Origin: Oculina patagonica
Taxonomy: Eukaryota
Reading direction: 5' to 3'
Assembly: GCF_052425735.1 (NCBI RefSeq)
Contig: NC_135767.1
Span: forward strand, 14,322,001-14,386,000
DNA length: 64,000 nucleotides
Position 1 is the stretch's first letter, and every line of letters starts with the position of its first letter. Made by a program: the position numbers and the translations under genes. The notes beneath the pieces are model-generated. The model did not search any database. It was not told the DNA's origin and worked only from the letters and a program-made list of their open reading frames with translations. This document shows positions 1 through 24,136 of the stretch, piece by piece.

Positions 1-3000
1 AGTTTGACGTTTGAATATCATTTAAAATCGGCAGATTTGAATGAAATGCGACGTCTACCGCATCTTCGACTTGGCTAGTAGAATATTCGACAAAAGTTCG
101 ACAGTTGCTTTATACGTCGAACTTCACATGTGCCAAATTGATGTATTTGCCTTCGACGAAAGAGATCGTATACTGATCGTTCTTTTTTTTTTCGAAATCG
201 AAATAAAATAGAAAGGAATTAAAACAATAATTAGGCGCGCAGGTCTTCTTAGAACGCAATGTCCAAAATTCAACTTTTCAGTGTATAGCCGCTTTTTACT
301 TTCGTATGCCATTAAGGACGGTGCCTACTAATAACAAAGTATTTTTTCCCGGCCAATGACTATACAAGAAATGTAGATGTTACCAAGGGCTACTAAAATT
401 CAAAAAAAATTGGGGGTAGCCACGCAAATTTTCGAGATAATTAGGTTTGAAATCTGGAAAAAAGTGCTGACGTGGCATTTTAAAATAAAGTAAACTTAAA
501 TAGAATTTCCTTGCAAATTCCATTTGAAATTGGTTTTTCATGAACAAAATCAACATTAAATATAACAACATTTACAATAACTAACAAATAATTTCTTCGG
601 AACTGCGTGATCCACGTTTTTATTAACAAAATAATTGCGTTTGAGCCATTTTTGACTCTAGCAGCTCTCACTGCACTTGCACGGCCAGAAAATCGGCCTA
701 AATTTTTTTTCACTTAATGAAAAATTAAACATGTGCTCTATAGACTTACCACTTATATTTTATAAATAAAAACTAGGGGTCACCACGCGTTTTTAAAAGT
801 TATACCAGTTGTTTTCAGGGTCTATGAAATCGCTTTTGGGGTCTGTTACATTTTTTTTATCCCCTCCCTAGCGAGTTGAATATTTGCATCTCGCGCGTGC
901 ACTACGCCATTTGTCACGGTTAGCAGTTTGCGGGTAACGTTTTAGCGCTTAGCGATTTGTTTTTAAGAGTGTGTCCATAAGAGGACCAGGCAACAGGTGA
1001 TACAGCTCATATCACCGATTTCGCCCAAACTTACCATAAATGCTGGGTATGGTGAGCTATTTACTGTGACAAAACATCAGCTTAAACTATTTTATTCCCT
1101 TCAAGTTATGGCACCTTTTGCAAAAATGGCCATTTTTCACTAATTTATGCATATTTAATTAGCTGACTTTGATTGACCAGTTCCACAAGAAAAAAAGACT
1201 TCTGAAAATAAAATTCACTGCATTATATTCTGTGGTTATTAGGCTTTAAGTACAATAATTCACTTCAACCGTCTGATTTGATTTCTTCTCTTCAAACGGT
1301 CTTTTGGAAGGTACACATTTCGTACTGTTGGAAATAGCCTTTAGCTAGTGCCCAATATCTCCCATGAGCAACAACTTATATACATTATTCTTACATGGGT
1401 AATGAAATCCATCTCTAAACTTCACAAAAATGCCACAAAATGTCTGGGGACTTCAATATTTTATTAGTATTGAGGAACTAAACACACGTAACTTAACGAT
1501 TTCTTGCTATTTCATCAAAATTCACCGAAACACAGAAGCCATTTATTTTCCTCAATTTGGCATAAAATCGGTACGAAATAGCTAATCAAGCATAAATCTA
1601 TAGATAACAATCAAAATATTGGCGAAGAAAAGGCAGTTAGGACATTTTTCGGAGCGTTTTCAGAGCCGATATAATTCGGCAATGTTGTGATAGCAAATGT
1701 AAAAATAGCAGCGAAAGATTTTCTTCAAAAGCTCGCTCAATTCAACATTTAGGCACATCAAAGTTAAGAAACAAGAAAGTAATACTACATACATGCCACT
1801 TATCGACACACAGATGCTTTCTTTTGAAGGATTTGTTCTTCCTCGCTGCACTTCGATCCTTCGATCGATCTCAATTGACATGTACTGTTGCTTTGAGGCG
1901 CGATGAACTTAGCCAATACATCGTGGTTCATTCTTCGTGAAAGGTGTAAACAGGTTGTAAATAAAGTCATTCAAAGAGCTGTTCAAAGTTCACGGAAGGA
2001 CACTTCTCTCAGCCAGTTTGAATGAAATAAATTTAACTGGAAAATAAACAGCCGCCATGTTGTATTTCTACCTTTGAGCCTGCCGTTTCAGTCAGCGGTA
2101 CGGCCGTTCACTGGGGCAAGTACGTAGTGTAGTCATCATATAGTTGTTTGACTAAATCCTATATAGGGATATTCATAGAGGGGATACATAGCCTAGCCCT
2201 ATACAGCTATACACACCTATAGATAGCTTAACACAGCTATACACAGCTATACACACGCGTGTTCATTTGCTTTTCCTCCGCAAATGTTTGTTTTCGTTGG
2301 AATAAGTAGCGGATGGCGTTATCTACCCTCTGAACAACCGGGGCTTGATCTTAGCCTTATAAGTAGTGTGCGTTTCTTGTAAAAGTGAGAATTTTTTTCA
2401 ACTTCTCCATTGAATTTTTTTGATAAATAGTTGATGAGAAATACACTGGATGCAGTGTAATGTATGCGATGCAATTGGTTTTGATGCTCTGAAATTGAGC
2501 TCTGAAATGTCGTAAACCATTAAATAATCAGAGCAAGTTTTTTCCATCTTATATCAGGTTAAAACTAGTATGTTTATTGTTTTTTTGTTGTTACTGTCTT
2601 TTTGGGAGGTGGGGGAGGGGGTGAATATGGACATTCGAAGAAATGGCGGTCAGGTTGTCAGCCTGGCCTGTGTACATCTATTCCTTCTGTTCAAATCGTC
2701 TATATTACATTACACTTTGGCAGCTAGGAGACTGAATTTGTACCCACTCTCTTTTTCGGGATCCCACAAAGTTCTCCATCTGTCCATTTACCGATAAACG
2801 TCATTACTGCAGTTTTGTTTTAGAAAAAGGCTTTTATGGGGACAAATTTTTCCTCCTGAATGTCCACATTGCAAGTGACGAATTGCGGCTTCAAATGATA
2901 ATTTTCTTCATCACCGACTCAATTTAAGTGGCTATGCGAGTTACAAAGACGCGAATGCAGACTTTTGTAAAGAGCTTAAACCCCGCATTAACACTAAACA

Positions 3001-3605
3001 AATTCATTGCAAGACTAGGACTACGCAAGACGGCAAAACTTATTAGCTAATGTTTCAACCAGCACAGGTAGTCTTCTGTCTTCTTCGAGGTCAACGCGAG
3101 GGAAACCCGTTTTATTTGTTGTTGTTTTCTCTCTCTACATTCACACCTTTATAGATATATGTATATATTTGCTGCGCCATATAGACTGCGTCGCTAAAGG
3201 CATTTCGTACGTGAATACTTTGTTCAGTTCAGCACAGACGCTCCCCCAACTAAAGCACTTGCGCAAGAAAGACCACCTGCTACGATTACAAAACCTGCCT
3301 CGCTATCCACCGGATAGTGATTTATCCCGTGGTAAACGTTATTCTCCAATTTTGCTGAGTTATTCATTTTTTCCCATTTATGCCCCGGGGGTAGGGGAAT
3401 TTGGTCAAAAAATGTAATCGTTATGCGCGGTATTAATCACTATTTCCGCCAGGGGAGGGGAATTTGAGCAAGCAATAAAAAAATAAAAATGTCTGGAAAG
3501 TAACTGGGAGACGTTGACATTTTGATTTGTTTAACTGTGTAGCGTCTTTTATGCTAAAAATAATTGTTTATGTTCCAAAATGACGCTAAATGGCGGTATA
3601 AAACT

Positions 3606-3643
3606 GCTCCGACGTTTCGGCAATACTGCCTTCTTCAGGGTGC
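3606..3643 (-). ncRNA. Minimal hammerhead ribozyme motif (Penelope type)
   Basis: Minus strand reads GCACC-CUGAAGA-A-GGC(AGUAUU)GCC-GAAAC-GUC-GGAGC: CUGANGA and GAAA core boxes, stem II, a very short stem III and a GUC cleavage triplet. Confidence 0.55.
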
Positions 3644-3685
3644 CACCCCAAAAAAGGCAGTATTGCCGAGACGTCGGAGCAGTTT

Positions 3686-4435
3686 CAGGGGCGGATCCAG
3701 GGGGGGTGGATTGGGTGGCTAGCCACCCCCCTTGATCCACCAAAAAAATTAAAATAAAGAATAAGGACAATGTTTTCCAAAATAGGAGATTTTCGACAGC
3801 CTGTTTTACGAACTTCTGGCTTAATGTAACAAAACATGTGTGTAAAAAAAATAGATTCCTTTTAGCTTTCAAGAGTTGTTTTAGCCTTGCTGGTCAGGAA
3901 TGATTTTCTTCTCCATTTACTCCTTTTTGAGTTTTCTTACTTTGCCAAGGGCTAAAAATTTCCACGCACGTGAAAGGCATATCTGTTCTTTCCTGTTCGT
4001 TTCCTGTCAACTTTAAATTTCAATCACTGTTCATTTCATAAGAACAAGACTTTTTCTCCGAAATATAACTCAAGGTATATAAGTTGAGGAAAGAATATTT
4101 TGCCAAATTATCAAGGAAAAACAGTGGTTTAATAACTTAATTGACAGCTGTATAACGCTGCTCAGAATTACCGAAATCACGTCTAAGAGGCTTCAACTTT
4201 TCAAACTTTTCTGAGGGGGCATGCCCCCAGACCGCCCTAGGGGGATGGAGCCTATGGTTATGAAATATGGGCCTGAGACCTAAAATAATTTGCACTCCCA
4301 CTTTCAAAAAACTGCCTAAAAGCCTGAACCCCCCCCCCCCCCCCAAAAAAAAAAAAAACGGGGCTTAAACAATATAGTAAACAAGAATATTGGAAAACAG
4401 CCACCCCCCTTTGAAAAATCCTGGATCCGCCCCTG
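3686..4435. mobile_element. MITE with CAGGGGCGGATCCAG TIRs and 5-bp TSD
   Basis: Perfect 15-bp TIR; AGTTT duplicated at 3681-3685 and 4436-4440. The intact mirror arm of the host palindrome confirms a single original copy. Confidence 0.88.
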
Positions 4436-6742
4436 AGTTTTATACCGCCATTTAGCGTCATTTTGGAACATTAACAATTATTTTGATTTGGTTGCCGTGC
4501 ATGCCGACCGTTGAACATAAAAATCAAGAACTCTGTTTCGGTGAAAGTCAAATGGAACAGCATTTTTTCTGGAAAATCTCTTCGGAAATTGACGGAACGT
4601 CAGAAATTTTCTTACCATTTGTAAGGTTTCCCAGTTCTAGTCTCCCATCCTTCGGAAAGAAATAACAGGAAACTGAGCTACAAATGGTAAGCGACATCTA
4701 TTTCGGTTAGTTTGCTAATTTTGGAAAGAAGCCTTTCAATTCCAACCGGTTCTCTCCAACAAATGGTAAGCACCCTAGAGTTTGTTCAGCATCACATTGC
4801 GGTAAACACGTCAAGCTGTAGCGGAGGAAATAGTTTTCCCTGCGACAATTTGAAAATATTCTCATTTTCATCACAAACGCATCCAACGAACACTCGCAGA
4901 GGAAAAGCAAATGATCGCGCGTGTGGTCACGCGTGATGGACGCGTGATGCCCAGTGAACGACCGTACCGCTGACTGAAACCGCAGGCTCAAAGGTAGAAA
5001 TTCAACATGGCGGCTGTTTATTTTCCAGTTAAATTTATTTCATGCAAACTGGCTGAGAAAAGTGTCCTTCCGTGAACTTTGAACAGCTCTTTGAATGACT
5101 TTATTGACAACCTGTTTACACCTTTCACGAAGAATGAACCACGATGTATTGGCTAAGTTCATCGCGCCTCAAAGCAACAGTACATGTCAATTGAGATCGA
5201 TCGAAGGATCGAAGTGCAGCGAGGAAGAACAAATTCTTCAAAAGAAAGCATCTGTGTGTCGGTAAGTGGCATATATATGTAGTATTACTTTCTTGTTTCT
5301 TAACTTTGATGTGCCTAAATGTTGAATTGAGCGAGCTTTTGAAGAAAATCTTTCGCTGCTATTTTTACATTTGCTATCACAACATTGCTGAATTAAGTTT
5401 ATATCGGCTCTGAAAACGCTCCGAAAAATGCCCTAACTGCCTTTTCTTCGCCAATATTTTGATTGTCATCTATAGATTTATGCTTGATTAGCTATTTCGT
5501 ACCGATTTTATGCCAAATTAAGGCAAATAAATGGCTTCTGTGTTTCGGTGAATTTTGATGAAATAGCAAGAAATCGTTAAGTTACGTGTGTTTAGTTCCT
5601 CAATACTAATAAAATATTGAAGTCCCCAGACATTTTGTGGCATTTTTGTGAAGTTTAGAGATGGATTTCATTACCCATGTAAGAATAATGTATATAAGTT
5701 GTTGCTCATGGGAGATATTGGGCACTAGCTAAAGGCTATTTCCAACAGTACGAAATGTGTACCTTCCAAAAGACCGTTTGAAGAGAAGAAATCAAATCAG
5801 ACGGTTGAAGTGAATTATTGTACTTAAAGCCTAATAACCACAGAATATAATGCAGTGAATTTTATTTTCAGAAGTCTTTTTTTCTTGTGGAACTGGTCAA
5901 TCAAAGTCAGCTAATTAAGAGAATGTCTCCTTTAGATCCACAAACTTAATTTGGCTCAGTAAATAGAATTCGCTCAAAATCCCTCCAGTAATTTCTTATT
6001 ATAAGTAAGTAACAAATATGGAATTAGACTGGAGAAAAATTGTTTTCTTTATGAAATCTGGATGAAAACCTTTTACACCTTCTGGTGGCCTCGATGGCCA
6101 TTGGCCGGATCGTGAAATTTGGTAAAGTCCAACCATTCGCTCTAATACAAATATTGCGGCTACATCGCTTAAATACCGATATTTGTAAACAACAAGCCTT
6201 GGCCTTTTAAACTGGATGAACCGCATTGAAAAACTTTGATTATCAAGAAAGAGACGAGGATCTAAAGTTTGGCTATTTTGGATGTTAAAGGCCAGCTCAA
6301 ATTTTCCTTAGCTTTATGTAGTAAAATATCAAAAGTGGCTCGTACTCACAAGTTAAACTGCATATCAGCGGCAAGCTCCATCCTTCCGCTCTGAGAATAT
6401 GTAAAAATATTTGGCCGTTCTCTACTCCTTCGGTTGTTGACAAGGGGCGAAACAAGTGCTACTCGGCGGATTTCGCCATGTTGTCATCATAACAATTCGA
6501 ACCAACTTCAGTACCAAAAAGAGGAGAATTTTGTTTGATCACTAGTACATTTATCTCGCAGCGAAGGAAGAAATCACCTTGCAATCCGCTTTTATCTGAA
6601 CGGAAATTATCACGTCAAGATAGTCCATTTTACAGCAACTTTTACAGCAACATATCGATCTTCTACTGTCAGCCATCTTGGTTTTAAAACATCCGCTGAC
6701 CAGTTTAGTCGGTCAGTATAAAACACCACGGACTTTGCCACA

Positions 6743-6812
6743 GACTGCGGACTGCGGACTGCGGACTGCGGACTGCGGACTGCGGACTGCGGACTGCGGA
6801 CTGCGGACTACG
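6743..6812 (+). repeat. (GACTGCG)n heptamer tandem array at the inner end of the TIR
   Basis: About nine GCGGACT units; the opposite arm has (GTCCGTA)n at ~10945-10970. Confidence 0.9.
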
Positions 6813-7048
6813 GGCTGGGTATAAACACAAATGCGGACTCAAACTGCGGACTGGGTATAGAATACGGACTACGGTATAAAATGCGGACTGAGCATATAAA
6901 ATACGTTTAAATGCAAACCACGACTAGAAACAACGACTTTTTTTTATCGACGGTTGTTGAAGGCGGCACGAAGAAAAGCACACAAACTGCTCGTCAAGAT
7001 TCACAGCGAAATCAAAATTTATTTTTTCTTTCACGATAAATACAATTC

Positions 7049-7670
7049 CAGTGCCGTAGCAAGGGGAGGGGCCGGGGGGGGGGGGTCGTGCCCCCCAGTT
7101 TTTTTCCCAAAAAGTAAAAACAGACCCGTATGAAATGTTGAAAATAAAATTTTATCTCCCAAAAGGTTTGAAACAATAACATTTGTACTTCTTTTCATTT
7201 TTTAACGTACGTAGGGTGAGGCACAACAATATTAAATAGCTAAAAAATAAACTAAACGAACTAAACTTTGGGAAGTTTTCAAAAAACGACCTGCCGATGA
7301 AGTCTACGTTTGTCTCTAAGGCAACTCAGACAGTTTGATAACTACGAACTCACTATGATGACTCTGAAAAGTGAAACATTTGCTGGTTTCAAGATACAGA
7401 GACAGTCGGTTTTCTATTTTGTAATTGACGTTGCAAGTGTTATACTCTCTTCAATGTGCATTGGTTTGCTGAGACAGTGTAGGAAGAAAATAATTTTGCG
7501 ATTTGCGTAAATCACAAATAGCTCTTGGAGAACGCTGGAAATAGCATTTCCAAGCCTCTAGATTTCAAAATTTTCTGGGGGGGGGGGGTGCATTCCCCCA
7601 CACCCCCTAGCGGCTCGCGTCTCCGGCGCTCGCGTGCCCCCCCAGTTATTTTACCCTTGCTACGGCACTG
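7049..7670. mobile_element. MITE with CAGTGCCGTAGCAAGGG TIRs
   Basis: Perfect 17-bp TIR; flanks AATTC / CATTC (probable 5-bp TSD with 1 mismatch). Confidence 0.85.
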
Positions 7671-8074
7671 CATTCTCTCAAAAATGCTCTGCTCGGTATC
7701 TGTGAAAGAAGAGGCTTACCTTCATTAACGCTCTCATCGTTCTTGAAATTTGACTGGTTCGCCTTCAAAACATTCGTCCGTTCCACTGGATGTTTTATGA
7801 GAAATATACGGTGAGATTCCGAGAATTTACTTGCGAGCTTTCCGCCGCCATATTGGATTTGCGACATATACAAGTGCTTGGTTTTCAAAAGAAGACGCAA
7901 TGCTCAATCTGCACTCTTTCAACTTGAATTTTTTCTCTGCGTCTAGACAAATAACTACTTCGGATATCTATAGCGTCAATACGTGAGATAACTAAAAAAA
8001 ATAATAAATAAAAGAGAAGAAACATTGAGGGAAATCACCAACGTGAAAAGCTACCTTTTACTGTCGAAAACGTA

Positions 8075-9920
8075 TAGTCAGGTCGCTTAGCACAAATGTT
8101 TGGAGAAATCGTTACATGGTTGATAAAAGCACCAAACTTTGCAGAATGATTCTTTAATGACTATTCAATAATTTTATCCGTGGCTCCACCTGAATTTTAG
8201 TCTTGCAATTTGCAAAATTTGCTAAACGTTTTTTACCACGAACAAACTCTCAAGCACCGCTACCAAGCCATTTTGAATTGATGCAATGACAGTTGGACAG
8301 AAGCAAATATTCGTCTACTCCGTAAGTAATTTGCAGTTCTATGCTTAAATGTTGTAAAAATATATATAAATTGAAGACATTGTTGAAGGTTTCGCTAAAA
8401 TTTCAATTTTTAGATGCAGTAATCTAAAATGTTTATTATGGTAATTATGCGCTTGTAGTTTGTGGCCGCCCAGGGAAGCGGAACATGCTTAAAGAAGCCT
8501 TGAAGAAACGAGATTACACAGAGGTCGCATAAGGTTTTGGTCAAGCTACGGCAGCTTCAATAATAAGAAAATACATTTTCAGCAACGAGGCATATAAATT
8601 TATGGATCGTTTCCAGAGAATAGTCAAAAAGCGTCGTTACCATCTAGCCTCAAAACCTTAATGTTCTTAATTTTCAATGGAGACGGTTTGAAAAAGAAAG
8701 ATAAGCACGAGTCCAAAGCATGCCTTACCGTTGATCAGCCTATTGTCTACAACACATAGAAAAAAATCAAAGGAATCCGATACAGAAACAAGGCACTTTA
8801 GGGAGCGTGAACCGCCTCTGCCTGTCTACATTGACCTGAACATGCATAGATTGACGAGATGCAAGCGGATCATCCAGCATTTACACCAGCTGGAAATTTC
8901 TATTTCCTATGTCAGGGTCAAACAACTTGAAGAGTGCGAGCACTCTGACGAGGATGGAGTTGTATCCCTTGCCTGCGAAAGGTCTGTTCACTGTTGGTGC
9001 CTTAGACAGCCTTCAAAAAGCGGCTCTTTTCTTGTTACCGGCATCAGTCTCCTCCAGTTTCCAACTGAGAACCAACCAGGTATAAGTACACAACCAGTTA
9101 CGATTTCTCCATCTGTACCTAGAAAGCTCTCTGCCTTGTTCCACGCTTTGTCTGGTTGTAACATCACATCCAGATTTAGGGGAAAGGGCAGACTTGACAG
9201 GCATTTAAAGAGGAAACAGAAACACTTCCCTCTTTAGCCTCCCATGCGATTGAGTCCTTTGATGCCGACTGTGAGCACTTCCGAAAAACTGAACGGCTGG
9301 TTATTATCGTTTATGACAAAGAGAGTTCGTCCTTGTTCCTTAACCAAACTAAGCTTGAACTTTTCTGTCTTAAGAACGTTCATTGAGAAGATGCCACCGA
9401 CGGACAATGCTTTGCTTTAACTCACAATAGACGGGCGTTCAACCTAGGACACTTGTACTGATACTGAGCAAAATATCCCTTTACCTTATAAACACCTTAT
9501 CGAGTTTCACTCTCTTTATATTTTTCATGTTTTTCTGTTAATTTTTGGATCAAGGGGGTGGCTAGCCACCCAATCTAACGCCACTAGATCCACCCATGTC
9601 TAGGATATTATAATTAATTTTTTCAAGCCTTAAACCGCCGCATTTTTTCTTTTGTCAGTAAAAAAGGACTGCGTGGGATGCTAGTTTTAGGGAACCTGGA
9701 AATCGCGTGACTTTTTCTTCAATTTGCCTTATGGGTAATACATATTTGATAAAGGCCTGCACAAAATAGCGACGGACAGCCCCTGAAAAATCTAGTTGAC
9801 CGCTTACGAAAGAGAACATTGCAGAACAACTTTTATCAATTTATGCAAATGAGCTCAAAACGTTTAGTTTTAAATTTCAAGGAAAATAAAAAAAAATCGG
9901 GTGGAGCCACGGATAAACTT
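8075..9920 (+). mobile_element. Degenerate Academ-type (XPG-domain) DNA transposon remnant
   Basis: TAG start; subterminal TTTATCCGTGGCTCCACC is inverted at ~9900-9917. Broken coding fragments RHFREREPPLPVYI..ISISY.RV, LFHALSGCNITSRFRGKG and EKMPPTDNALL* resemble Academ transposase/XPG segments (recognised from memory). Confidence 0.6.
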
Positions 9921-9954
9921 GAAACAAGAATCGAAAAGAGGCTGCATGCAATAC

Positions 9955-10128
9955 TCTCACAGTGCCTCTCTTCACCCAGGTGTATAAATGGGTACCGGCG
10001 AATTTACTGCTGGGGGGTAACCCTGCGGTGGACTAGTATCCCATCCAGGGGGAGTAGCAACACTCCTAGTCGCTTAATGCTACGGAAACCGGGATAAGCT
10101 CCGGCTGTATGGGCCACTTGGCTCGGAC
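9955..10128 (+). mobile_element. SINE fragment (Deu/Nin-domain-like, common in anthozoans)
   Basis: CACAGTGCCTCTCTTCACCCAGGTGTATAAATGGGTACCGGCGAA...CGGGATAAGCTCCGGC body; 5' tRNA head missing. Confidence 0.6.
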
Positions 10129-12954
10129 ACAGACTGAAAACGGCAGCTCGATTTTGCGATTCAAAACTCCGGTTCCAAACTCGAATGTTGAGAGGATTAT
10201 CGTCTGGCTTCACGTGGCAGACACGTACGAATTTTGCCGAATTTTGCTTGTTTTCGCTACACTAACACACGGTTTGTTTTAACGTTTCGCCATTCGCTTA
10301 TTCAACACCCCTCGGACTTCTGTAATACCAAAAAAGAGGTACGAAATTTCAAGTACTGAAGAAGTTAAAAAATTCTACTGGCAACCCGGTTTTCATTGTC
10401 ATGCAAATTAGGGTTGTTTGTCAAACTCCCACGTGCCTGCCGCTTGAGGCTGGCCAGATATGCAGTTGAATAACGATAACTAACTAAGGAGATCGAAAAA
10501 CGTTTGAGATATCGGGAGTTCGAGTTAGCAAGGGTACTAAATTATTAGGGGAAAAACACCTGGAGGATCGGAGAAAGTTCGAGTTTAGCAGGAGGTTCGA
10601 GTTATCTGTAAGGAAATCGACAACATTATATTAAGTTTTGAGTCGAGTCTCCACTGCAACTCCGATCCAAGAATCAAAGACTAAAGCGAATGAAACAAAC
10701 ACAAATTTTAAGTTCCTCACAATTGGAGGGATTTTAATGTGTTTTGACAGTACTTTGCTGTAATCTACGAGCAGGCTTTCTGTAGGAAAAAGGCTAACTT
10801 TATCGAGCTAGGCGAGAAGGTGAGACAACTTTGATGCTCAGTTTATTCAGCCTTGCTTCTAGTTATTTTTAACATCAGGTCACGTTTGGTAGCATTTTGC
10901 ATGCTTAGTCTGCATTTTATACCGTAGTCCGTGTTTTATACCCAGTCCGTAGTCCGTAGTCCGTAGTCCGTGTTTTATACTGACCGACTAAACTGGTCAG
11001 CGGATGTTAAAACCAAGATGGCTGACAGTAGAAGATCGATATGTTGCTGTAAAAGTTGCTGTAAAATGGACTATCTCGACGTGATAATTTCCGTTCAGAT
11101 AAAAGCGGATTGCAAGGTAATTTCTTCGTTCACTGCGAGATAAATGTACTAGTGATTTAACAAAATTCTCGTCTTTTTGGTACTGAAGTTGGTTCGAATT
11201 GTTAAGATGACAACATGACGAAATCCGCCGAGTAGCAATTGTTTCGCCCCTTGTCAACAACCGAAGGAGTAGAGAACGGCCAAATATTTTTACATATTCT
11301 CAGAGCGGAAGGATGGAGCTTGCCGCTGATATGCAGTTTAACTTGTGAGTACGAGCCACTTTTGATATTTTACTACATAAAGCTAAGGGAAATTTGAGCT
11401 GGCCTTTAACATCCAAAATAGCCAAACTTTAGATCCTCGTCTCTTCCTTGATAAGCAAAGTTGTTCAATGCGGTTCATCCAGTTTAAAAGGCCAAGGCTT
11501 GATGTTCACAAGTATGGGTATTTAAGCGATGTAGCTGCAATATTTGTATTAGAGCGAATGGTTGGACTTTACCAAATTTCACGATCCGGCCAATGGCCAT
11601 CGAGGCCACCAGAAGGTGTAAAAGGTTTTCATCCAGATTTCATAAAGAAAACAATTTTTCTCCAGTCTAATTCCATATTTGTTACTTACTTATAATAAGA
11701 AATTACTGGAGGGATTTTGAGCGAATTCTATTTACTGAGCCAAATTAAGTTTGTGGATCTAAAGGAGACATTCTCTTAAATATGCATAAATTAGTGAAAA
11801 ATGGCCATTTTTGCAAAAGGTGCCATAACTTGAAGGGAATAAAATAGTTTAAGCTGATGTTTTGTCACAGTAAATAGCTCACCATACCCAGCATTTATGG
11901 TAAGTTTGGGCGAAATCGGTGATATGAGCTGTATCACCTGTTACCTGGTTCTGCCCTGTTCTCTCACGGGCACACTCTTAACTGTTAATGTGAGCCATAT
12001 TCAGTGGTTAGCGGTCAATGGTTACTGATATGTTGCTTTTCGGCGGTTCCAGGCTTAGGATATGTCCATAAACTGGATTTCGTCGCAGAGAAAACTTTCT
12101 TGATTTTTAGTCGCGCGCTTGGTCGCGTAGTTGAATTCGTCATTTTGAGCGAGCAAATTAATTAAAAGCGCGCGCGCCCAGTGTGATCGATGCGTTGCGT
12201 GATGCGCAGAACAAGTGCGCAGTAGCAATAGGAGACACCGTCCTTTTTAAAGAGCGGCATTCTGAATGAACAGTTGCGCAAACTCAAATAGAAATTATCT
12301 GAAAAAGAGCCTGCCGCTGATAAAAACTCACGGCGTGGGACAACAGTAAACTTTGCGTTTGCGGGCCCGGCGATACACAAACGCCTGTTAAGTTTATGCG
12401 CAGTGTAGTTTTGAGGACAACATTTCAGCTTGATTTTAGCGGCTCTATCCTTTGTATTTCTCTAAAATAAAATATCCACCGCGCTCGCTCGCAGACTGAG
12501 AATTAACGCATACGGTTATCTGGGTTATCAGCCAGTTTTCTATACAAGAAGTTTTTTTTACAAAAGAGCTTGGGTATGTTCTGTAACTCGCAATAAGGAT
12601 CATATTTAATTTCTCCGTACTATACTTGATACCTTATCGAGAAGACGAGAGATGAGAATTAAATAAATCGTCAACAACCACGCGACATAAATTCTTAAAA
12701 GTGCCACAAGGTAAATATAAGCTATTCAGCAAAACAACAGTTCAAACAAGCCAAAAGGCCGATAATTGATCGCAAGAGCATTGTGAAAGGAGCGGTTACC
12801 GCTTAGTTATGTAGCCGCTATTGAGCGGTGAAAAAATTTGTTAATTGCTGAAGTTCTTTAGTTATCGGCCGATAGTTAGTTTCTTTAGTTATCGGCCGAA
12901 AAACCATTGTTTTTGTCGGAGCGCTTTGTTGTTTGTTGATTGACGGCTGTCAAT

Positions 12955-12996
12955 GTATAAATAAGGTTTGGGGTTGTATGGATTCTTCATTCAGTT
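12955..12996 (+). promoter_or_regulatory. TATA box + initiator of homeobox copy 1 (equivalents at ~17180, ~21677, ~29995, ~40315)
   Basis: GTATAAATA followed ~30 nt later by TTCATTCAGTTT, then ATG ~40-45 nt further; conserved in all five copies. Confidence 0.75.
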
Positions 12997-13037
12997 TGTG
13001 CAGCAGTTACTGTAACAAGTTTATCAGCTCAGTTGTA

Positions 13038-15079
13038 ATGGAGAGTCATTACTTTAACTCAGTTGTTTCTCTCGTGGATTCTGCAGTTTCACCCAGTCCT
13101 CCTGTCCGTGCTTCGTCCTTGCCACCAGTCTTCCGTCCATCGCTGACTGACTTCTCCATCAGAAGGATCCTGGGTCTGGAGAATGACGTAACACATCAAG
13201 AGTCAACATGCTCCGGTGAGTCAAATTTAAGCAATTCTGTAATAGTACGGTCAGTTTGTAATAATTGGATGATTTAGAAACCAAACTGATTGACGTGATA
13301 GAAATATATATATTTCTGTAATAGAGCTGAGGTCACTGATAATTACAAATTAAGCTTCTAGTGGTATAATATCAAGCTACCGGTTGTCTTCAAAATCACC
13401 CTCTCAATCAGTTGAAGACAAGAAATGAAAGGATATAATTTTAGTAGCGAGAATCAGATCTGAAACTTTTGAAGCGCGTATTTGAAGAAACTTGCGTACT
13501 CTCTGCGTACAGTTAGTTGTCTGCCGTACAATGTTTTTTCTTAGTAATAGATGCAATTGCAAATTGATTTCAAAAGTTAATTTTGCGGAAAAGGATACAA
13601 TTTACGTGTCTCATCGAGCAAAAGTCAGAGAAAACGAGAAATGCTATGAGAACACAAGCCGATGTTGCAGCTTTTTCGAGTTTTTTTTTTCTATTTTTTT
13701 TTCTATTTCCTTTCTATAACAAACAAAAGACTGGTCAAATTCACCTCCATGCACATGCTAAAACTACCTGTCAGTTAAAATCCACCTTCATAGAAAAACT
13801 CGAGCGATTTATAAATGTTAATGTTTAATTTTTCGTGAACAGTAGCAGTGGAACTCCGTCACTCCATTCAGACTCCAAGTCCTCAACACAGCTACAGTGA
13901 TACCAGCCCACGATCATCTCCTTATTCCGACAACACAAGTTCCACCAGCGATTGTGACAGCGATCCCGATCAAGTATCGACACATTCCGAGCAGCCACCG
14001 AGAAAGAAGCGACAGCGAACGACTTTCTCGCCGATTGAAGTGTGGGAGCTGGAACGAGCATACAAGCGGCGGCCATATCTAATGTGTGAAGATGAGGAGG
14101 AACTGGTGCAGAGACTTGGTATCCCAGCTAGAAGTTTGAAGGTGAGTTGGATTTAATTATGTTGTGAAAGTTTTGTGCTACTAAAACTTTGACCCCTGAA
14201 TAATTTTTCTTTCATGGTCAATCAAATTATTTATGTGCTGCATTTTGAACGTTTTGAAACTAAAAACAATGAATTTTTCCCCATATTTTTTAAGTCTTTA
14301 AATTGTGGGTTAATTCTAGACAATAATTCATTTAGTTGATTTTTTTTTTATCTTGCCGTCTATCTGTGTGACATTTTATGGATTTTGTTACAAACATACG
14401 CAGAGAAAAGTAAACTCTAGTTATCAAATCAAGTTTTCGAACAATATGAAAAAAAATTCCTGTCTTGGTCTTAGCATGACCAATTTAACATGTTTAGTAA
14501 TGTTATCGTACTTTGATTAATTTTCATTTAAAAAAGCATAGAAAAGGTTTATCGTCGTATACAGTTTTTTTTATTCATTTCAATAAGCGTAATTTTACTC
14601 GAAAATTATTGTAAAACTTTCAAGTCCTTGTTGATCAGGTTGATTTTTTGCTGAATGTATTTAACGATTGATTTGTGGTTTATTTTCAGTATTGGTTTCA
14701 GAACCGCCTAGCCAAATCAAGAAAAGAAGAAAGAAAGGTGACATCCGTCCATCAGACCAGCCCGTCAAACCAGTTTGGGCGTCCTACCACTAGAGTCATG
14801 CCTTGTGAGAGAACCCAGTTTCTGATCCAGTCCCCTTCAGATCACTGGAAGCAAGCTGAACGTATGTCCAACCCAGTGCTGCAAAACCAGTTAGAAGATA
14901 AGCCGCGCAGCCGACCAATTACAGCAGACTACCAGTACTCGTCATTCAAGTCAAACCAGTTTAAAAGCCGTTCATCGTTCCTGTTACCCATGTTCCACCC
15001 GGACCAGTTCAAGAGAAGACCAGCTGAGCCCGCAAGACTATCGTACAGCTGTAACTTACGTAGATACCAGCCGTACTAA
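13038..15079 (+). CDS. Divergent PRD-class (Q50) homeobox protein, copy 1; exons 13038-13215, 13843-14141, 14690-15079; ~288 aa; R53L variant
   Basis: eh1 motif TDFSIRRILGL; homeodomain KKRQRTTFSPIEVWELERAY...SLK|YWFQNRLAK with a phase-0 intron between codons 46 and 47; GT-AG sites keep frame; ends RYQPY*. Confidence 0.88.
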
Positions 15080-15689
15080 ATGTAAGTTTTTGAAAAAGAA
15101 ATGGTCTAAAATACGAAGCAATTTTCATTTTTAACCTATGAATAAAATAGCTTAGACATTTCTCTTTGTAGTGAAGAAAGGAACCGTTTATGTAAACAGA
15201 CGCAATTAGAATAAAACTATTTAGAGTCATTAGAAATGTGTGTTTACTGTAAAAATAAATTAGTGTAATAATCAGATGGTACTAATATAAATAAACACAT
15301 TTTATAGTTAAAAAAGCGTCGTTTTCTTTTGTACTAAGTGTATAATATTTACAGTGCGGCACGCCTTACCGTGGCCACCCAACAAACTTTTTTACAATTG
15401 TGTTTTCGTAATATTATTATTTGTTTGACGAACATGCCTCCTTGCAAAGTTGAATACGATCAAATAGATACTTGTTACATCGTATTTATCAACAAAACGC
15501 AGTGAAAACGTCAAATATTACAATATGACACTTGTAAAAAAAGTTTGTTGGGTGGCCACGGTCACGATAATTTCAGTGCGAAAACCGAATTCAATCATTG
15601 TTTTATCTTTCGAAAAAAGCTGCCGTTTTTCTTAGAATTGGACAATACTTCACTTGAGCAGAATTTTATTTGCAGCAAAATCAGGGGGC

Positions 15690-15890
15690 TTACGTTACCT
15701 TGTTAACGTAGTATATAAGTGTCAATTTCATTCCAGTTCCAGTTGGTTGGTAGCAAATAATAGCAAATAGTGATTGTGAAATAAGTCCAACGCAAAGATC
15801 AGTGACCGCCAGGCATCACAACAACAGTTTTGTTGGTGGACAAAGAGAAGACTCTTTATGAAGGGCAACAAGAATCAGAATCGCCCAGTG
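15690..15890 (-). pseudogene. Class A GPCR fragment (TM1-TM2)
   Basis: Degenerate [32 protein letters not shown], similar to the intact GPCR at 55540-56463; duplicated at 20036-20240. Confidence 0.7.
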
Positions 15891-16479
15891 ATGCGGTGAT
15901 CGATAGAAAAATATTTAAGGCTGAAAGAAAAGCAACAACTATAGACATGTCTGTTGGCCTTAGCATTTCTCTTGTTTTTTTTTTTTCAGCTCGCTTGTGT
16001 AGTTTCCGAAAGCAGTCATTGCATAAAAGTTCTTCATAGTTGTTCACTAGTGCATGCAGTTAAGCGTGTTTGATGGCCAATGAGCTTTCCGCTGTGAAGG
16101 GGGAGATCAGTGTTTTAAAACACTTTCGAACTGAACAATATTAAGTTATTAGCCAAAACAAATAGTCGACGTCGGAAGAAAACTCCCGAAAGGATATAAA
16201 AGCTTCACCAAACAACTATCAATAAAGCTTTCATGGATTAATTCGGATATATTAAAAATGCAGATTACAAGTTTTGCTGATGATAACAGTGAAACGTGAA
16301 AATTCTTCAGTACTGAAAAGCCTCGCCTTACGACAACTCCAAGTACAACAGTAAAGTATCCGGGAAATGAATCATTAAAACTTCGGGTTTTACTCATTGT
16401 ACTAATAAGCGCTAAAAACATCATCGATTATTGAGCGACTGACCAACTTTCAGCAAAACACATCTTAAAGAAATATTGA

Positions 16480-16905
16480 CCTCCATGCTAGATTAATATG
16501 TCTTACTTGGGTGGTGAGATCTGAGGGTAGCATATTGGTTTCGCTAGATAATTATGTCTAACTTGAGTGATTAGTTCCTTATTGAACTCATGTTATCTGT
16601 GGGAGCATATTAACCTCGTGCTACATTATTCTTGGTTGGTGAGTTCGTTATGGAACTCATACTATCTGAGGGCAGCATTCTATCCTTGTGCAAGATTATT
16701 GTCTTACTTGGTTGGTGAGTTCCTTATGGAACTCATATAATCCGAGGGCAGCGTTCTAAACTCGTGCAAGATTATTATGTCTATTTGGTTGCTGAGTTCC
16801 TTATGGAACTCATATTATCCGAGGGCAGCATTCTAACCTCGTGCAATAATATTATTATGTCTTACTTGGTTGGTGATTTCCTTATGGAACTCTTATTATA
16901 TGACT
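16480..16905. repeat. ~78-bp minisatellite, 5-6 copies, at the junction of the copy-1/copy-2 duplication
   Basis: Recurring TTGGTTGGTGAGTTCCTTATGGAACTCATATTATCCGAGGGCAGCATTCTAACCTCGTGC; each unit has the hairpin GAGTTCC-TTAT-GGAACTC. Confidence 0.85.
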
Positions 16906-17262
16906 AGCTCCGTAAATTCTTAAAAGTGCCACAAGGAAAATATAAGCTATTCAGCAAAACAACAGTTCAAACAAGCCAAAAGGCCGATAATTGATCGCCA
17001 GAGCATTGTGAAAGGAGCGGCTACCGCTTAGTTATGTAGCCGTTATTGAGCGGTGAAAAAATTTGTTAATTGTTGAAGTTCTTTAGTTATCGGCCGATAG
17101 TTAGTTTCTTTAGTTATCGGCCGAAAAACCATTGTTTTTGTCGGAGCGCTTTGTTGTTTGTTGATTGGCGGCTGTCAATGTATAAATAGGGTTTGGGGTT
17201 GTATGGATTCTTCATTCAGTTTGTGCAGCAGTTACTGTAACAAGTTTATCAGCTCAGTTGTA

Positions 17263-19307
17263 ATGGACAGTCATCACTTTAACTCAGTTGTTTCTCTCGT
17301 GGATTCTGCAGTTTCACCCAGTTCTCCTGTCCATGCTTCGTCCTTGCCACCAGTCTTCCGTCCATCGCTGACTGACTTCTCCATCAGAAGGATCCTGGGT
17401 CTGGAGAATGACGTAACACATCAAGAGTCAACATGCTCCGGTGAGTCAAACTTAAGCAATTCTGTAATAGTACGGTCAGTTTGTAATAATATGATGATTT
17501 AGAAACCAAACTGATTGACGTGATAGAAATATATATATTTCTGTAATAGAGCTGAGGTCACTGATAATTACAAATTAAGCTTCTAGTGGTATAATATCAA
17601 GCTACCGGTTGTCTTCAAAATCACCCTCTCAATCAGTTGAAGACAAGAAATGAAAGGATATAATTTTAGTAGCGAGAATCAGATCTAAAACTTTTAAAGC
17701 GCGTATTTGAAGAAACTTGCGTACTCTCTGCTTACAGTTAGTCGTCTGCCGTACAATGTTTTTTCTTAGTAATAGATGTAATTGCAAATTGGTTTCAAAA
17801 GTTAATATTGCGGAAAAGGATACAATTTACGTGTCTCATCGGGTAAAAGTCAGAGAAAACGAGAAATGCTATGAGAACACAAGCCGATGTAGCAGCTTTT
17901 TCGAGTTTTTTTTCCTATTTTTTTCCTATTTCCTTTCTATGCCCTATAACAAACAAAAGACTGGTCAAATTCACCTCCGTGCACATGCTAAAACTACCTG
18001 TCAGTTAAAATCCACCTTCATAGAAAAACTCGAGCGATTTATAAATGTTAATGTTTAATTTTTCGTGAACAGTAGCAGTGGAACACCGTCACTCCATTCA
18101 GACTCCAAGTCTTCAACACAGCTACAGTGATACCAGCCCACGATCATCTCCTTATTCCGACAACACAAGTTCCACCAGCGATTGTGACAGCGATCCCGAT
18201 CAAGTATCGACACATTCCGAGCAGCCACCGAGAAAGAAGCGACAGCGAACGACTTTCTCGCCGATTGAAGTGTGGGAGCTGGAACGAGCGTACAAGCGGC
18301 GGCCATATCTAATGTGTGAAGATGAGGAGGAACTGGTGCAGAGACTTGGTATTCCAGCTAGAAGTTTGAAGGTGAGTTGGATTTAATTATGTTGTGAAAG
18401 TTTTGTGCTACTAAAATTCTGACCCCTGAATAATTTTGCTTTCATGGTCAATCAAATTATTTATGTGCTGCATTTTGAACGTTTTGAAACTAAAAACAAT
18501 GAATTTTTCCCCATATTTTTTAAGTCTTTAAATTGAGGGTTAATTCTAGACAATAATTCATTTAGTTGATTTTTTTTATCTTGCCATCTATCTGTTTGAC
18601 ATTTTATGGATTTTGTTACAAACATACGCAGAGAAAAGTAAACTCTAGTTATCAAATCAAGTTTTCGAACAATATGAAAAAAAATTCCTGTCTTGGTCTT
18701 AGCATGACCAATTTAACATGTTAAGTAATGTTATCGTACTTTGATTAATTTTCATTTAAAAAAGCATAGAAAAGGTTTATCGTCGTATACAATTTTTTTT
18801 ATTCATTCCAATAAACGTAATTTTACTCGAAAATTATTGTAAAACTTTCAAGTCCTTGTTGATCAGGTTGATTTTTTGCTGAATGTATTTAACGATTGAT
18901 TTGTGGTTTATTTTCAGTATTGGTTTCAGAACCGCCGAGCCAAATCAAGAAAAGAAGAAAGAAAGATGACATCCGTCCATCAGACCAGCCCGTCAAACCA
19001 GTTTGGGCGTCCTACCACTAGAGTCATGCCTTGTGAGAGAACCCAGTTTCTGATCCAGTCCCCTTCAGATCACTGGAAGCAAGCTGAACGTATGTCCAAC
19101 CCAGTGCTGCAAAACCAGTTAGAAGATAAGCCGCGCAGCCGACCAATTACAGCAGACTACCAGTACTCGTCATTCAAGTCAAACCAGTTTAGAAGCCGTT
19201 TATCGTTCCTGTTACCCATGTTCCACCCGGACCAGTTCAAGAGAAGACCAGCTGAGCCCGCAAGACTATCGTACAGCTGTAACTTACGTAGATACCAGCC
19301 GTACTGA
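17263..19307 (+). CDS. Divergent PRD-class homeobox protein, copy 2; exons 17263-17440, 18073-18371, 18918-19307; intact
   Basis: Near-identical to copy 1 including introns, but with canonical WFQNRRAK. Confidence 0.92.
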
Positions 19308-19761
19308 ATGTAGGTTTTTGAAAAAGAAATGGTCTAAAATACGAAGCAATTTTCATTTTTAACCTATGAATAAAATAGCTTAGGCATTTCGCTTTGTAGT
19401 AAAGAAAGAAAACGTTTATGTAAACAGACGCAATTAGAATAAAACTATTTAGAATCATTAGAAATGTGTATTTACTGTAAAAATAAATAAGTGTAATAAT
19501 CAGATGGTACTAATATAAATAAACACATTTTATAGTTAAAAAGCGTCGTTTTCTTCTGTTTTAAGTGTATAATATTTACAGTACGACGCGCCTTACCGTG
19601 GCCACCCAACAAACTTTTTTACAATTGTGTTTTCATACTATTATTATTTGTTTGACGAACATGCCTCCTTGCAAAGTTGAATACGATCAAATAGATACTT
19701 GTTACATCGTATTTATCAACAAAACGCAGTGAAAACGTAAAATATTACAATATGACACTTG

Positions 19762-19872
19762 ATGTAATGTATATGAAGCCCTGTAATGTATATGAAGCCC
19801 TGAATTTTTTTCAGGCTTCTTTATTCCAATTGCTTAAATTGGAAATTCACTGCGACGATCATTTATCACTCT
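19762..19872. mobile_element. Short retroposed fragment with 13-bp TSD
   Basis: AATATGACACTTG duplicated (19749-19761, 19873-19885); insert absent from the copy-1 flank at ~15522. Confidence 0.8.
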
Positions 19873-20035
19873 AATATGACACTTGTAAAAAAGTTTGTTG
19901 GGTTGCCACGGTCACGATAATTTGCGAAAACCGAATTCAATAATTGTTTTATCTTTCGAAAAAAGCTGCCGTTTTTCTTAGAATTGGACACCACTTCACT
20001 TGAGCAGAATTTTATTTGCAGCAAAATCAGGGGGC

Positions 20036-20240
20036 TTACATTACCTTGTTAACGTAGTATGTAAGTGTCAATTTCATTCCAGTTCCAGTTGGTTGGTAGC
20101 AAATAATAGCAAATAGTGATTGTGAAATAAGTCCAACGCAAAGATCAGTGACCGCCAGGCATAACAACAACAGTTTTGTTGGTGGACAAAGAGAAGACTC
20201 TTTATGAAGAGCAACAAGAATCAGAATCGCCCAGTGATGC
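20036..20240 (-). pseudogene. Class A GPCR fragment, duplicate of 15690-15890
   Basis: ORF 20036-20317 contains [33 protein letters not shown] and then truncates. Confidence 0.75.
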
Positions 20241-21759
20241 GGTGATGGATTGATGGCCAATGAGCTTCCTGTTGTGTAGGGGCAGAATTTATTGCACGCC
20301 AGAGTAGTCATGATCATTTATACGACAATTTTTATTAAAACACTTACGAACTTAACAACATTATGTTATTAGGCAAAACAAAGAAAGAATAAAAGCTTCC
20401 TGAAACAACTGCCTTAAATTTGATGATTTCCATCGACGATCTTTTCAGCCAAAAAGTTTTCACATGGATTAATTCGTAACATTATTTAAAATAGGCTTAC
20501 GCAGATTTGTAGAGGACAGCTGAAGTTTTAAGCCACAAATCTGGCTTTATATCAAGGTGCACACAGTGGAAAAACAAATGGTACAAAAGCACTTGTTAGT
20601 TCTTTCCACATTTTCTAATTGGGGTTTATATTTAACTTGAGTGATTGCTTTCTTCCCGTTTACTTAGAGAACAATGAAGTACACAATTAGCTGTTTCTTA
20701 AGAAATATTACTTATGAGTAATATCCAACCTTTTTTTGTAGGTGGGGAGCAAATATGTCATTGTCACGTTGTTAAAAACAAGAGATTGCGCGGGTCACCA
20801 AGTGGGCAATCTTATGCGACCGTCCAAAATTCAACTTTAAAAGATATGGCCGCTTCTTACTTTCCTATGCTATAAAAAGAGCGGTATTCTAAATGAACCG
20901 GCGCACAAACTCAAACAGAAATTGTATGAAAAAGAGCATGCCGCCAATGAAATAAATTCACTGCGCTGGATATGTTTGAGTGCCCGGCTCTACACAAACG
21001 CTTGCTGAATTTATGCGCCATGTAGTTTTCAAGCCAACATTTCTGGTTGATTTAACGGGCTCTTCCTTTGGCATTGCCGTTGTACTTCTCAAGAGATAAA
21101 CTGTGATGTGTACGACTTTTTAATTTTGCACGTCAAGTCAGTGACGAGAAAGATCACTCGCAGACGGAGAAGTCGTTACTGCACATGGTTCTCAGCACAA
21201 TATTTTTGTCCCTATTTACCAATGTTGTATAATGTTTTCTACGAGTAGTTTTTATTTACAACAAAAATGAGATAGGTGATTTAATTGTCTGTACACAGGT
21301 ATGTTCGATTGTAACTTTCAACGGCGATCATTCTTAATTTCTTCCCGCTCACAATATCTGATACTTTATATTGATATACCTCTAAATTATCAAAAGTGAG
21401 TTTAAGATAAAGATAAGCTATTTAGCAATGAGAATAAATATATTGAGGCTGAAACGGGTAACACGCCTCCGTTCGACAAAAACAAGCGGAGACAAAGCAA
21501 TTGCATTTACCGGTCAGGATATCTTAAAACGAGCGGTTACCGCTTAATTCTGTAGCCGCTATACGGAGCGGTGCGAATATTTGACAATTGTTAAATTCTC
21601 TTGTTATCGGCAATGTCGGCCGAAAACCATTGTGTTTGCGGACCGCTTTGTTGTTTGATGATTGACGGCCGTTAGTGTATAAATAAGGTTTGGGGTTGAA
21701 TGGGTTCTTCATTCAGTTTGTGTAGCAGTTACTGTAACAAGTTTATCAGCTCAGTTGTA

Positions 21760-24136
21760 ATGGAGAGTCATTACTTTAACTCAGTTATTTCTCTCGTGGA
21801 TTCTGCGGTTTCACCCAGTCCCCCTGTCCGTGTTCCGTCCTTAGCACCAGTCTTCCGTCCGTCGCAGACCGACTTCTCCATCAGCAGGATCCTGGGTCTG
21901 GAGAATGAAGTAACTAATCGAGAACCGACATACTCCGGTGAGATCAAACTTTCGAAGTATTCTGAAAACACTAAGTAATAAGGTTTTAAAGTCAAATGTT
22001 GATACTGAAATCGAAGTGATCATGACGTATAGAGAGGTTGTCCTGATAGAGCAGAGGCCATTAATAATAACAGTATAGATTGATTTTTGATTGAGTGTCG
22101 GAAAACCTTAAGGACACGTACAATCCAGTGAACCAATCAACCTTGAAACAACTGTCATATAACCGGCAGGAAACGCGGAAAATGTGTGCGATTGTTTTGG
22201 TTTTACATGTAATTGCTCAAGAAAGTTGCGCAAATTTTTTTAGCTATGAGCAATCACAAAGCGTAGACAAAAAAATCCATAGCAAACGCTTAATACTTTT
22301 GATACTCATGTGAAAATCAATCTTGTTTTCAAAGTTTATTTCTAGCGGAAATATAATTCTGTTTGATGACCCGATCAAGTTAACTGAATAGACCACCAAT
22401 TTACCAACAAAGGTCTAACAAGTACGGATCTAGTGTGTAAAGGAAACACGCTAACGTACACTGTGCAATAAGTTATTCGTATGCATTCTGCTTAGAAGTC
22501 TAGGAACTATTTGATGAAAAATAAATTACCTCGGTACATTTAAATTTTAACGAAGTTCAACTGTTTTTCCCGGATATAAGCCGTCCATAAATTTCCTGCA
22601 TTTTGCTATGTATCCATTAAACAAGTTAAATTGGTATAGAAATTACACATCGTAGAAAACTTCTTTATCAGATGTTAACGATCTTTTTTTTTCAACAGCG
22701 CTGGTGGAATGCCGTCACTCCATTCAGACTCAAAGTCCTCAACACAGCTACAGTGATACCAGCCCACGATCATCTCCTTATTCCGACAACACAAGTTCCA
22801 CCAGCGATTGTGACAGCGAACCCGATAAAGTTTCGACACATTCCGAGCAACCATCGAGGAAGAAGCGGCAGCGAACGACCTTCTCGCCGATTGAAGTGTG
22901 GGAGCTGGAACGAGCGTACAAGCGGTGGCCATATTTGATGAGTGAAGATGAGGAGGAACTGGTGAAGAGACTTGGTATCCCGGTTAGAAGTTTGAAGGTT
23001 AGTTCCTTTGATTTTGTTTAGGAAAAATAGTGACGTTGTTTGACCGTTAACCTAATCAAGAACCAATAGCTGATAAAGCTAAATTGTCGCATCATAAACC
23101 TTAAAAAATATTTGCAAAGGAATGTTAATAAGGTTTTTTTTAATAGTATTAGATACGGTCGTAGATAGTCTTAGTTACACGGCCCCATAACCTATTTTAG
23201 TTTTAAGTTTTTTCACCGTGTAAAATTAAAAGTTGTTGTTGTTGTCATAATTTTAGCAACATTTGTTGTTTAGGTTTTGAGAGAATGCAGAAAGTGAATT
23301 TTTTTGTTATTCTGGCATAACAAGGAGACGTCGTTACGCTTTTTATCGTAATTTTTACCTGTTAGACAAATTTAAACGTAGGCAAATCCAGTGTTACATA
23401 TTTTTACCACAATATAACTTGGTGACAAGTCAAGAAATTTATCTAAAGAGGTCGACTGGATTCCAAAAAATTCCAAAAACGTTAGTGCAAGTTCTCAAGC
23501 TAAAATCTGGGATAGGAAAGTTAAAAGACGAGGAAGTTATTTTTCAGGAGGTTAACACTATTTAAACTTACTTATCTTTGCTAGTGCATCACAAAATGGC
23601 GTCCAAACACCCCGTCGAAATTTGTTGACGTCTTGACACGTTGGAGGTCGAGTCTAATACAATCAGTTCAGCTTAGTTTCAGCCACGTTCAAAGTGGACT
23701 ATTTGAAAAACACGGATAACAGGAAGGTTAAGTCTGACAACTCGGTTAACGGAAAGTTCTTCTTTTTTTATTCTTTCAGTACTGGTTTCAGAATCGTCGT
23801 GCAAAGTCAAGGAAAGACGAAAGAGAGTCAGCATCCATCCGTAAGACCGACCGGTCAGACCAGTTTGGGCCTTCCACCAGCAGACTCCATCTCGAAAGTT
23901 GGCAACCACGGCGACAACAGTTACCTGTCAATCACGGCTGGCAGATTCACCGTGAGTTCCTTACAGTGCAGGCACACCGGTCAAACCAGTTGTCACACAC
24001 GCCTCAAGTGACAGTTAAGCATCCCTCGTCACTCCAGTTACCCATGTTCCACCCAGACGAGTTCAAGAGCCGACCAGTTACCGAGCCCGCAATGCTACCG
24101 TTCAGCCGCAGATTACATAGATACCAACCGTATTGA
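21760..24136 (+). CDS. Divergent PRD-class homeobox protein, copy 3; exons 21760-21937, 22699-22997, 23780-24136
   Basis: TDFSISRILGL; homeodomain ...SLK|YWFQNRRAKSRKDE. Exon 3 (not in the ORF track) is open for 119 codons, ending PMFHPDEFK...RLHRYQPY*. Confidence 0.9.

Follow-up and report, generated by a model that had tools for sequence, protein, structure and literature searches.

The Drosophila transposons Foldback and Galileo have inverted ends of kilobase length, occur mostly as non-autonomous copies, make longer target duplications than the elements described below, and are members of different superfamilies. In Foldback, each arm consists of an array of subrepeats, and the arms take up most of the element. 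Kojima and Bao describe Kolobok elements as having TTAA duplications and 5'-RR and YY-3' termini (two purines at one end and two pyrimidines at the other), unlike piggyBac (PMC9587614). The KolobokP elements (PMC9587614) have direct repeats, each with short inverted ends of its own and also found as solo copies, which flank a transposase and a His-Me nuclease. Here, we analyzed a nest of four repeated elements, named A, B, C, and D, in a 64,000-nucleotide window of the genome of the stony coral Oculina patagonica (assembly GCF_052425735.1, contig NC_135767.1, positions 14,322,001 to 14,386,000 of the forward strand). All coordinates without a contig name refer to this window, that is, to the whole stretch analyzed.

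The nest is likely to be a stack of four cut-and-paste insertions of non-autonomous DNA transposons, and a Kolobok-type transposase is the leading candidate mover of B and C. An earlier note, made from the sequence alone, had described a three-level nest in which A hosts B and B hosts C. These levels are real, but the nest is deeper, as a fourth element, D, sits inside B. Overall, the nest comprises at least four elements, with D in B in A forming one line and C forming a second branch within B. The order of insertion that the note had read (A, then B, then C) is confirmed by the nesting and by the TTAA duplications.

Architecture of the nest

Repeat finding was run on positions 1-14,000 of the window, and the junctions were then read from the sequence to obtain exact limits. 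Two unrelated pairs of inverted arms were recovered where they had originally been placed: the B pair (982-2115 versus 4950-5918, continued at 11776-11952) and the C pair (5912-6687 versus 11007-11782). The three large elements and their parts are as follows.

316-12243: element A, left end GGACGGTGCC, right end GACACCGTCC, flanked by TTAA at 312-315 and 12247-12250
967-11977: element B, left end GAGTGTGTCC, right end GGGCACACTC, flanked by TTAA at 963-966 and 11978-11981
5919-11775: element C, left end GAGAATGTCTCC, right end GGAGACATTCTC, flanked by TTAA at 5915-5918 and 11776-11779
312-315, unstranded: TTAA, left target-site duplication of A (junction reading; empty-site paralogue at 20816-20900)
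316-966, forward: left part of A, with the TTAA copied by B at 963-966; terminus GGACGGTGCC
967-2115, forward: left arm of B, L-type terminus GAGTGTGTCCATAAGAG (repeat finding and family copies)
2116-4949, forward: interior of B, non-coding, conserved among copies, with a short palindrome and D
3557-3685 and 4436-4484, unstranded: palindromic stretch in the B interior, about 178 bp in total (inverted pairs; uninterrupted in copy L004)
3686-4435, unstranded: D, a miniature transposon of 750 bp whose inverted ends, CAGGGGCGGATCCAGG, are 16 bp long (empty site in copy L004)
4950-5918, reverse: right arm of B, inner part, ending in the TTAA (5915-5918) copied by C
5919-6902, forward: left arm of C, terminus GAGAATGTCTCC; close to the inner edge lies a minisatellite of 7-bp units (6743-6817)
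6903-10893, forward: interior of C, a non-coding mosaic of other repeats with the same layout in all full copies
7049-7670, unstranded: small element in the C interior with perfect 17-bp inverted ends CAGTGCCGTAGCAAGGG (present in four aligned complete C copies)
8075-9560, forward: piece of another repeat family in C, with a decayed frame at 8731-9237 (same piece found outside C-type ends)
10894-11775, reverse: right arm of C
11776-11779, unstranded: TTAA, right copy of the C target-site duplication (junction reading)
11780-11977, reverse: right arm of B, outer part, R-type terminus GAGTGTGCCCGTGAGAG
11978-12243, forward: right part of A, opening with the second TTAA made by B (11978-11981); terminus ..GACACCGTCC
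12244-12250, unstranded: TTT filler (12244-12246), then the TTAA (12247-12250) that is the right target-site duplication of A
20816-20900, forward: diverged paralogue of the A insertion site without A (empty site)

A itself measures about 912 bp. D lies within the palindromic stretch of the B interior, for which an Rfam search gave sub-threshold hairpin matches only. The 3 to 4 kb of internal sequence ascribed to both B and C in the earlier note needs adjusting for B: its interior is 2.8 kb here because of D, against about 2.1 kb in a canonical B.

Target-site duplications and empty sites

Empty sites were available for all four insertions. For B in A, matches to the left part (316-966) and to the right part (11978-12300) of A overlap by exactly 4 bases at dozens of other loci, so that intact A copies have one TTAA at the insertion site of B. 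One such copy lies on contig 6, at 25,220,447-25,221,096 and 25,221,093-25,221,360. For C in B, the left arm of B itself has one TTAA, at 1153-1156, and the arm is unbroken across this site in every other B copy compared. For A, the two flanks adjoin with nothing between them in the diverged paralogue at 20816-20900. The right-hand TTAA of A is intact at 12247-12250 and is set off from the element by three extra T; alignments of the A family stop at 12243 plus the first two of these.

In copies at other loci, TTAA precedes 30 of 30 sampled B left ends and 30 of 30 sampled C ends, with unrelated flanks. In paralogues without the insertion, each of the B, C, and A sites has just one TTAA, so that the motif is a genuine target-site duplication of all three elements. 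The proposal that each had inserted at TTAA is thus upheld, both by the empty sites and by the 60 of 60 family ends. D differs from the other three in having a 5-bp duplication, AGTTT (3681-3685 and 4436-4440), which is present once in B copy L004, where D is missing.

The region just to the right of the nest (12688-23000) consists of tandem units of about 4.2 kb, the first two of which are 98-99% identical; the empty site for A comes from a unit that has diverged further.

Copies of A, B, and C in the genome

The assembly searched is 529 Mb in size and consists of 14 large contigs and additional scaffolds. In it, a 21-base word that fits both types of B end occurs 262 times, compared with 0 times for a reversed control. 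One hundred of these 262 ends were listed, and the pairings and fractions given for B rest on those 100. They contain 24 pairs, each joining an L-type end (..TCCATAAGAG) to an R-type end (..CCCGTGAGAG), with a one-base variant of the R-type end in one pair. The median pair length is 4,397 bp, and the B copy in the window has a length of 4,395 bp once C and D are subtracted, each along with its own duplicated bases (TTAA and AGTTT, respectively). The arms of this copy (1,149 and 1,167 bp; 52% of the element) differ by 19 mismatches over 1,149 aligned bases (98.3% identity). Among 27 independent left arms, a sample biased toward copies resembling the one in the window, mean pairwise identity is 98.5% and mean divergence from the consensus is 0.82%. 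All 27 are flanked by TTAA and continue into the B interior, mostly unbroken and in a few cases with a deletion or a private insertion. Contigs 1078 and 1622, which are unplaced scaffolds, carry B copies whose flanks match those of copies on chromosomes 6 and 2 (L002/L003, L008/L014, and L016/L018). Such pairs are probably uncollapsed haplotype duplicates, which would mean that copy counts are slightly inflated.

For C, TTAA plus the first 12 bases of the element was found 63 times, and its reversed control 0 times. These ends form 27 convergent pairs, 13 of which span 5.82-5.87 kb (median, 5,853 bp; copy in the window, 5,857 bp); the lengths of the other pairs fall below this range (2.2-5.2 kb) or above it (6.1-10.7 kb). 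Among the large C-type elements are those on contig 8 (24,151,655-24,162,381), contig 4 (62,425,395-62,433,596), and contig 14 (4,337,844-4,344,565). The C arms, of about 0.89-0.99 kb, make up about 31-34% of the element and show 32 mismatches over 890 aligned bases (96.4% identity); they also differ in the length of a 7-bp minisatellite (GACTGCG) found at the inner edge of both arms (6743-6817 and 10944-10971). The copy number of this minisatellite varies between copies of C and between both arms. Four complete C copies, namely the one in the window and three rebuilt from overlapping loci, are 99.1-99.3% identical over all 5.85 kb, and their differences lie mainly in minisatellite length.

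The C arms cluster mostly by side and not by copy, with identities of 99.0-99.8% for left-left comparisons and 97.5-98.2% for left-right comparisons. As the arms group by side, the master copy would already have had two slightly different arms, and the unit would transpose whole. The right arm of a complete C copy on contig 4 (L033, L063, and L043) is equally close to both arm types (98.6-99.0%) and looks as it would after arm-to-arm gene conversion.

A left-part query yielded 208 candidate copies of A in the genome. The 39 best matches elsewhere are 94-97% identical to this left part, and all but one (38 of 39) begin at query base 1; overall, A copies show 94-98% identity to the copy in the window. 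Judged by these identities, the A copies are older than those of B and C, in agreement with the order A, B, C set by the nesting. By the same measure, B and C appear as young, homogeneous, multi-copy families, each of which is a fixed unit. B and C have arms of unrelated sequence, as had been reported, and A, B, and C share nothing beyond a vague likeness of their first dozen bases. The B and C families are also present at high depth in public runs of three organisms, in short contigs that do not span the nest locus.

Interiors and coding capacity

According to protein family searches of the open frames, there is no transposase inside A, B, or C and no piggyBac domain, and no open frame of at least 80 codons in the elements matches any Pfam family. 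The claim that the elements carry no cognate transposase is therefore borne out. An exon-like piece in the B arm (ATG...GTAAGT, 5095-5262) was considered as a candidate and gained no support as coding sequence.

The description of the interiors as made of other repeats also proved accurate. That of C is a mosaic of the small element at 7049-7670, a 1.49-kb piece (8075-9560), and a fragment resembling a D end (9554-9598). The small element is 622 bp long and is flanked by AATTC and CATTC. The 1.49-kb piece recurs outside C-type ends, with the same boundaries and at 78-87% identity. Its frame at 8731-9237, the only protein-like sequence in the interiors, is what remains, with frameshifts, of a large transposon protein whose relatives have 1,150-1,536 residues and DUF6589 as their sole named domain. 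The fragment found no match among solved structures, and an AlphaFold model of a DUF6589-type protein was too poor for a fold search, with a mean pLDDT (the model's confidence measure) of 53.6. No intact gene of this family lies inside any C-type pair or near the listed B-type ends. The piece is foreign to C and does not stem from an enzyme of the element itself.

The DUF6589 family is very large in the coral genome, where a first look gave 743 candidates, which are transposon-like genes with a single exon and intact frames of up to 1,536 residues. The family also has relatives in a clam and other animals.

The idea that the arms enclose variable passenger DNA did not hold. The four complete C copies are 99.1-99.3% identical throughout, and B copies run into the same interior. 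As all copies share the same mosaic, the cargo was acquired once, before amplification.

A sister family sharing one end with B

Of the 100 listed B-type ends, roughly two-fifths (about 40) are of the R type and lack an L-type partner. Unpaired R-type ends lie, for example, on contig 1 at 2,296,681, 25,271,314, and 26,157,764. Such ends can be told apart by a diagnostic variant, ..GAACCATGCAACAGG.., and have at least 190 bp of the arm in common with B (compare 11937-11977 in the window). No TTAAGAGTGTG was found near nine of them on the first chromosome. When up to 3 mismatches were allowed, forward and reverse B-type ends were equally frequent (283 + 283). This equality suggests that the unpaired ends form a sister family with a second end of slightly different sequence. 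The sister family may be the ancestor from which the second arm of B was copied and may in this way reveal the origin of kilobase inverted ends.

The enzyme behind the insertions

The termini are GG..CC in A and GA..TC in both B and C, and none reads CCC..GGG. All three elements have the RR..YY termini that the earlier note had invoked in favor of Kolobok and that distinguish Kolobok from piggyBac (PMC9587614). In addition, the end of A, GGACGGTGTC, resembles those of full-length Kolobok elements in Xenopus, AGGACGTGTC (PMC6004289). On two features, TTAA duplication and RR..YY termini, we assign the elements to Kolobok, and a Kolobok-type transposase is their most probable mover, an assignment in which we have reasonable but far from complete confidence. 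The label Kolobok-like is in keeping with the target site and the termini, but no Kolobok transposase or KolX gene was seen linked to the ends.

P2RX7_C is a homologue of KolX, an accessory protein of Kolobok, and a search of the genome with this family returned 49 matches. Many of these KolX-like matches (to the P2X7 "ballast" domain) have intact frames of 170-246 codons, and there is a concentration of matches on contig 4, at 29-43 Mb.

Several observations weigh against a Kolobok-type mover. None of the 49 KolX-like matches and no intact large transposon frame lies inside a C pair or beside the listed B ends. No autonomous element with B- or C-type ends was found in a survey in which C-type elements of 6.7-10.7 kb were not read and no Kolobok transposase query was used. 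The census of B ends covers only 100 of the 262 ends. Finally, TTAA is duplicated by piggyBac as well, so that the target sites of A, B, and C agree with either superfamily.

Under the model that we propose, A would have landed at a TTAA in intergenic coral DNA, followed by a canonical 4.4-kb copy of B at a TTAA inside A and then by a canonical 5.86-kb copy of C at a TTAA in the right arm of B. D would have landed in the B interior, and no place relative to C is assigned to it. The interiors of B and C would have been assembled from other repeats once, in a master copy. As B and C carry no transposase, they would have been moved by an enzyme made elsewhere in the genome. We propose a Kolobok-type transposase for this role because of the TTAA target and the purine-purine termini.

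The best of the other explanations is that B and C were moved by the transposase of piggyBac, the other superfamily that duplicates TTAA. The proven TTAA duplications speak for it, but all six termini start with GG or GA and end with CC or TC instead of having the form CCC..GGG, and the published criterion gives such ends to Kolobok (PMC9587614). The elements also contain no piggyBac domain, although piggyBac partners elsewhere in the genome were not searched for. Taken together, we consider a piggyBac mover unlikely.

B, C, and the sister family of B could also represent a distinct TTAA-targeting lineage that needs or favors kilobase arms and might be moved by an enzyme other than a typical Kolobok or piggyBac transposase. 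We regard this as rather improbable. If it were true, the unpaired R-type ends would mark the birth of long arms from a one-armed ancestor.

There is still less to recommend the idea that the arms are independent elements of about 1 kb with inner ends of their own, B and C being chance or composite pairs around bystander DNA. The many R-type B ends without a nearby L-type partner could be read in this way, although they appear to belong to the sister family that shares part of the arm. Free-standing solo arms, which the earlier note had named as a finding that would overturn its reading, are rejected. The inner edges of the arms (2115, 4950, ~6900, and ~10894) have no terminal motif or TTAA, each of the 27 left arms continues into the B interior, the spacing of pairs is constant with left and right types fixed, and whole C copies are 99% identical. 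Independent arms are therefore very improbable.

It is slightly less probable again that B or C is autonomous by virtue of an intron-rich or unrecognized gene. The longest frame that stays open in both C arms has 102 codons, and there is a 1.4-kb contig over the B interior in a run taken, as a guess, to be RNA. However, the 102-codon frame matches no protein family, as is true of the other frames, and its recognition score from a protein language model is far below that of real proteins. The only protein-like piece, moreover, is a frameshifted fragment of a family that has intact genes elsewhere.

Lastly, an assembly artefact as the source of the inverted arms or the nesting, the other outcome that the earlier note had set against its own reading, has a negligible probability, given that each layer is a canonical-length family member with a precise duplication and that every chromosome contributes to the dozens of loci at which the arm-interior-arm structure repeats. 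The architecture of the families cannot be due to misassembly, which is also very unlikely at the nest locus.

Comparison with known systems

Non-autonomous elements moved by an enzyme made elsewhere, presumably of the Kolobok type, leave the known workings of such transposons unchanged, and the nest is an ordinary pile-up. Its value lies in annotation. Exact ends, canonical lengths, and copy numbers are now available for three or four non-autonomous families of a stony coral that are undescribed and recently active, and TTAA-targeting elements continue to shape the coral genome. Inverted arms that are 96-98% identical can form hairpins and mislead assemblers and gene predictors, so it is useful to know them as a genuine feature of these families.

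Compared with Foldback, the arms of B and C consist of unique sequence and account for only 31-52% of the element. Tandem subrepeat arrays forming most of the element were not seen, the nearest approach being the short 7-bp minisatellite in the C arms. The term foldback, which had been applied to B and C, is thus a loose one.

B and C resemble KolobokP (PMC9587614) in their proposed Kolobok affiliation and in having terminal repeats of several hundred bp. Unlike in KolobokP, these repeats are inverted, lack inner ends, and surround non-coding DNA; direct terminal repeats with their own inverted ends and solo copies were not found in either family. Non-autonomous elements derived from piggyBac are alike in their TTAA duplication and in nesting by cut-and-paste insertion, and differ in their CCC..GGG ends.

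The closest counterparts are non-autonomous Kolobok elements, such as the T2-MITEs of Xenopus (PMC6004289) and Repbase-style Kolobok-N elements, which have the same TTAA duplication and two-purine termini. Unlike T2-MITEs, which are of miniature size, B and C measure 4.4 and 5.9 kb and have inverted arms of about 1 kb; no sequence link between B or C and a Kolobok transposase was seen. What B and C have in common with T2-MITEs (PMC6004289) is the lack of a transposase, a high copy number, the similarity of the copies, and recent activity.

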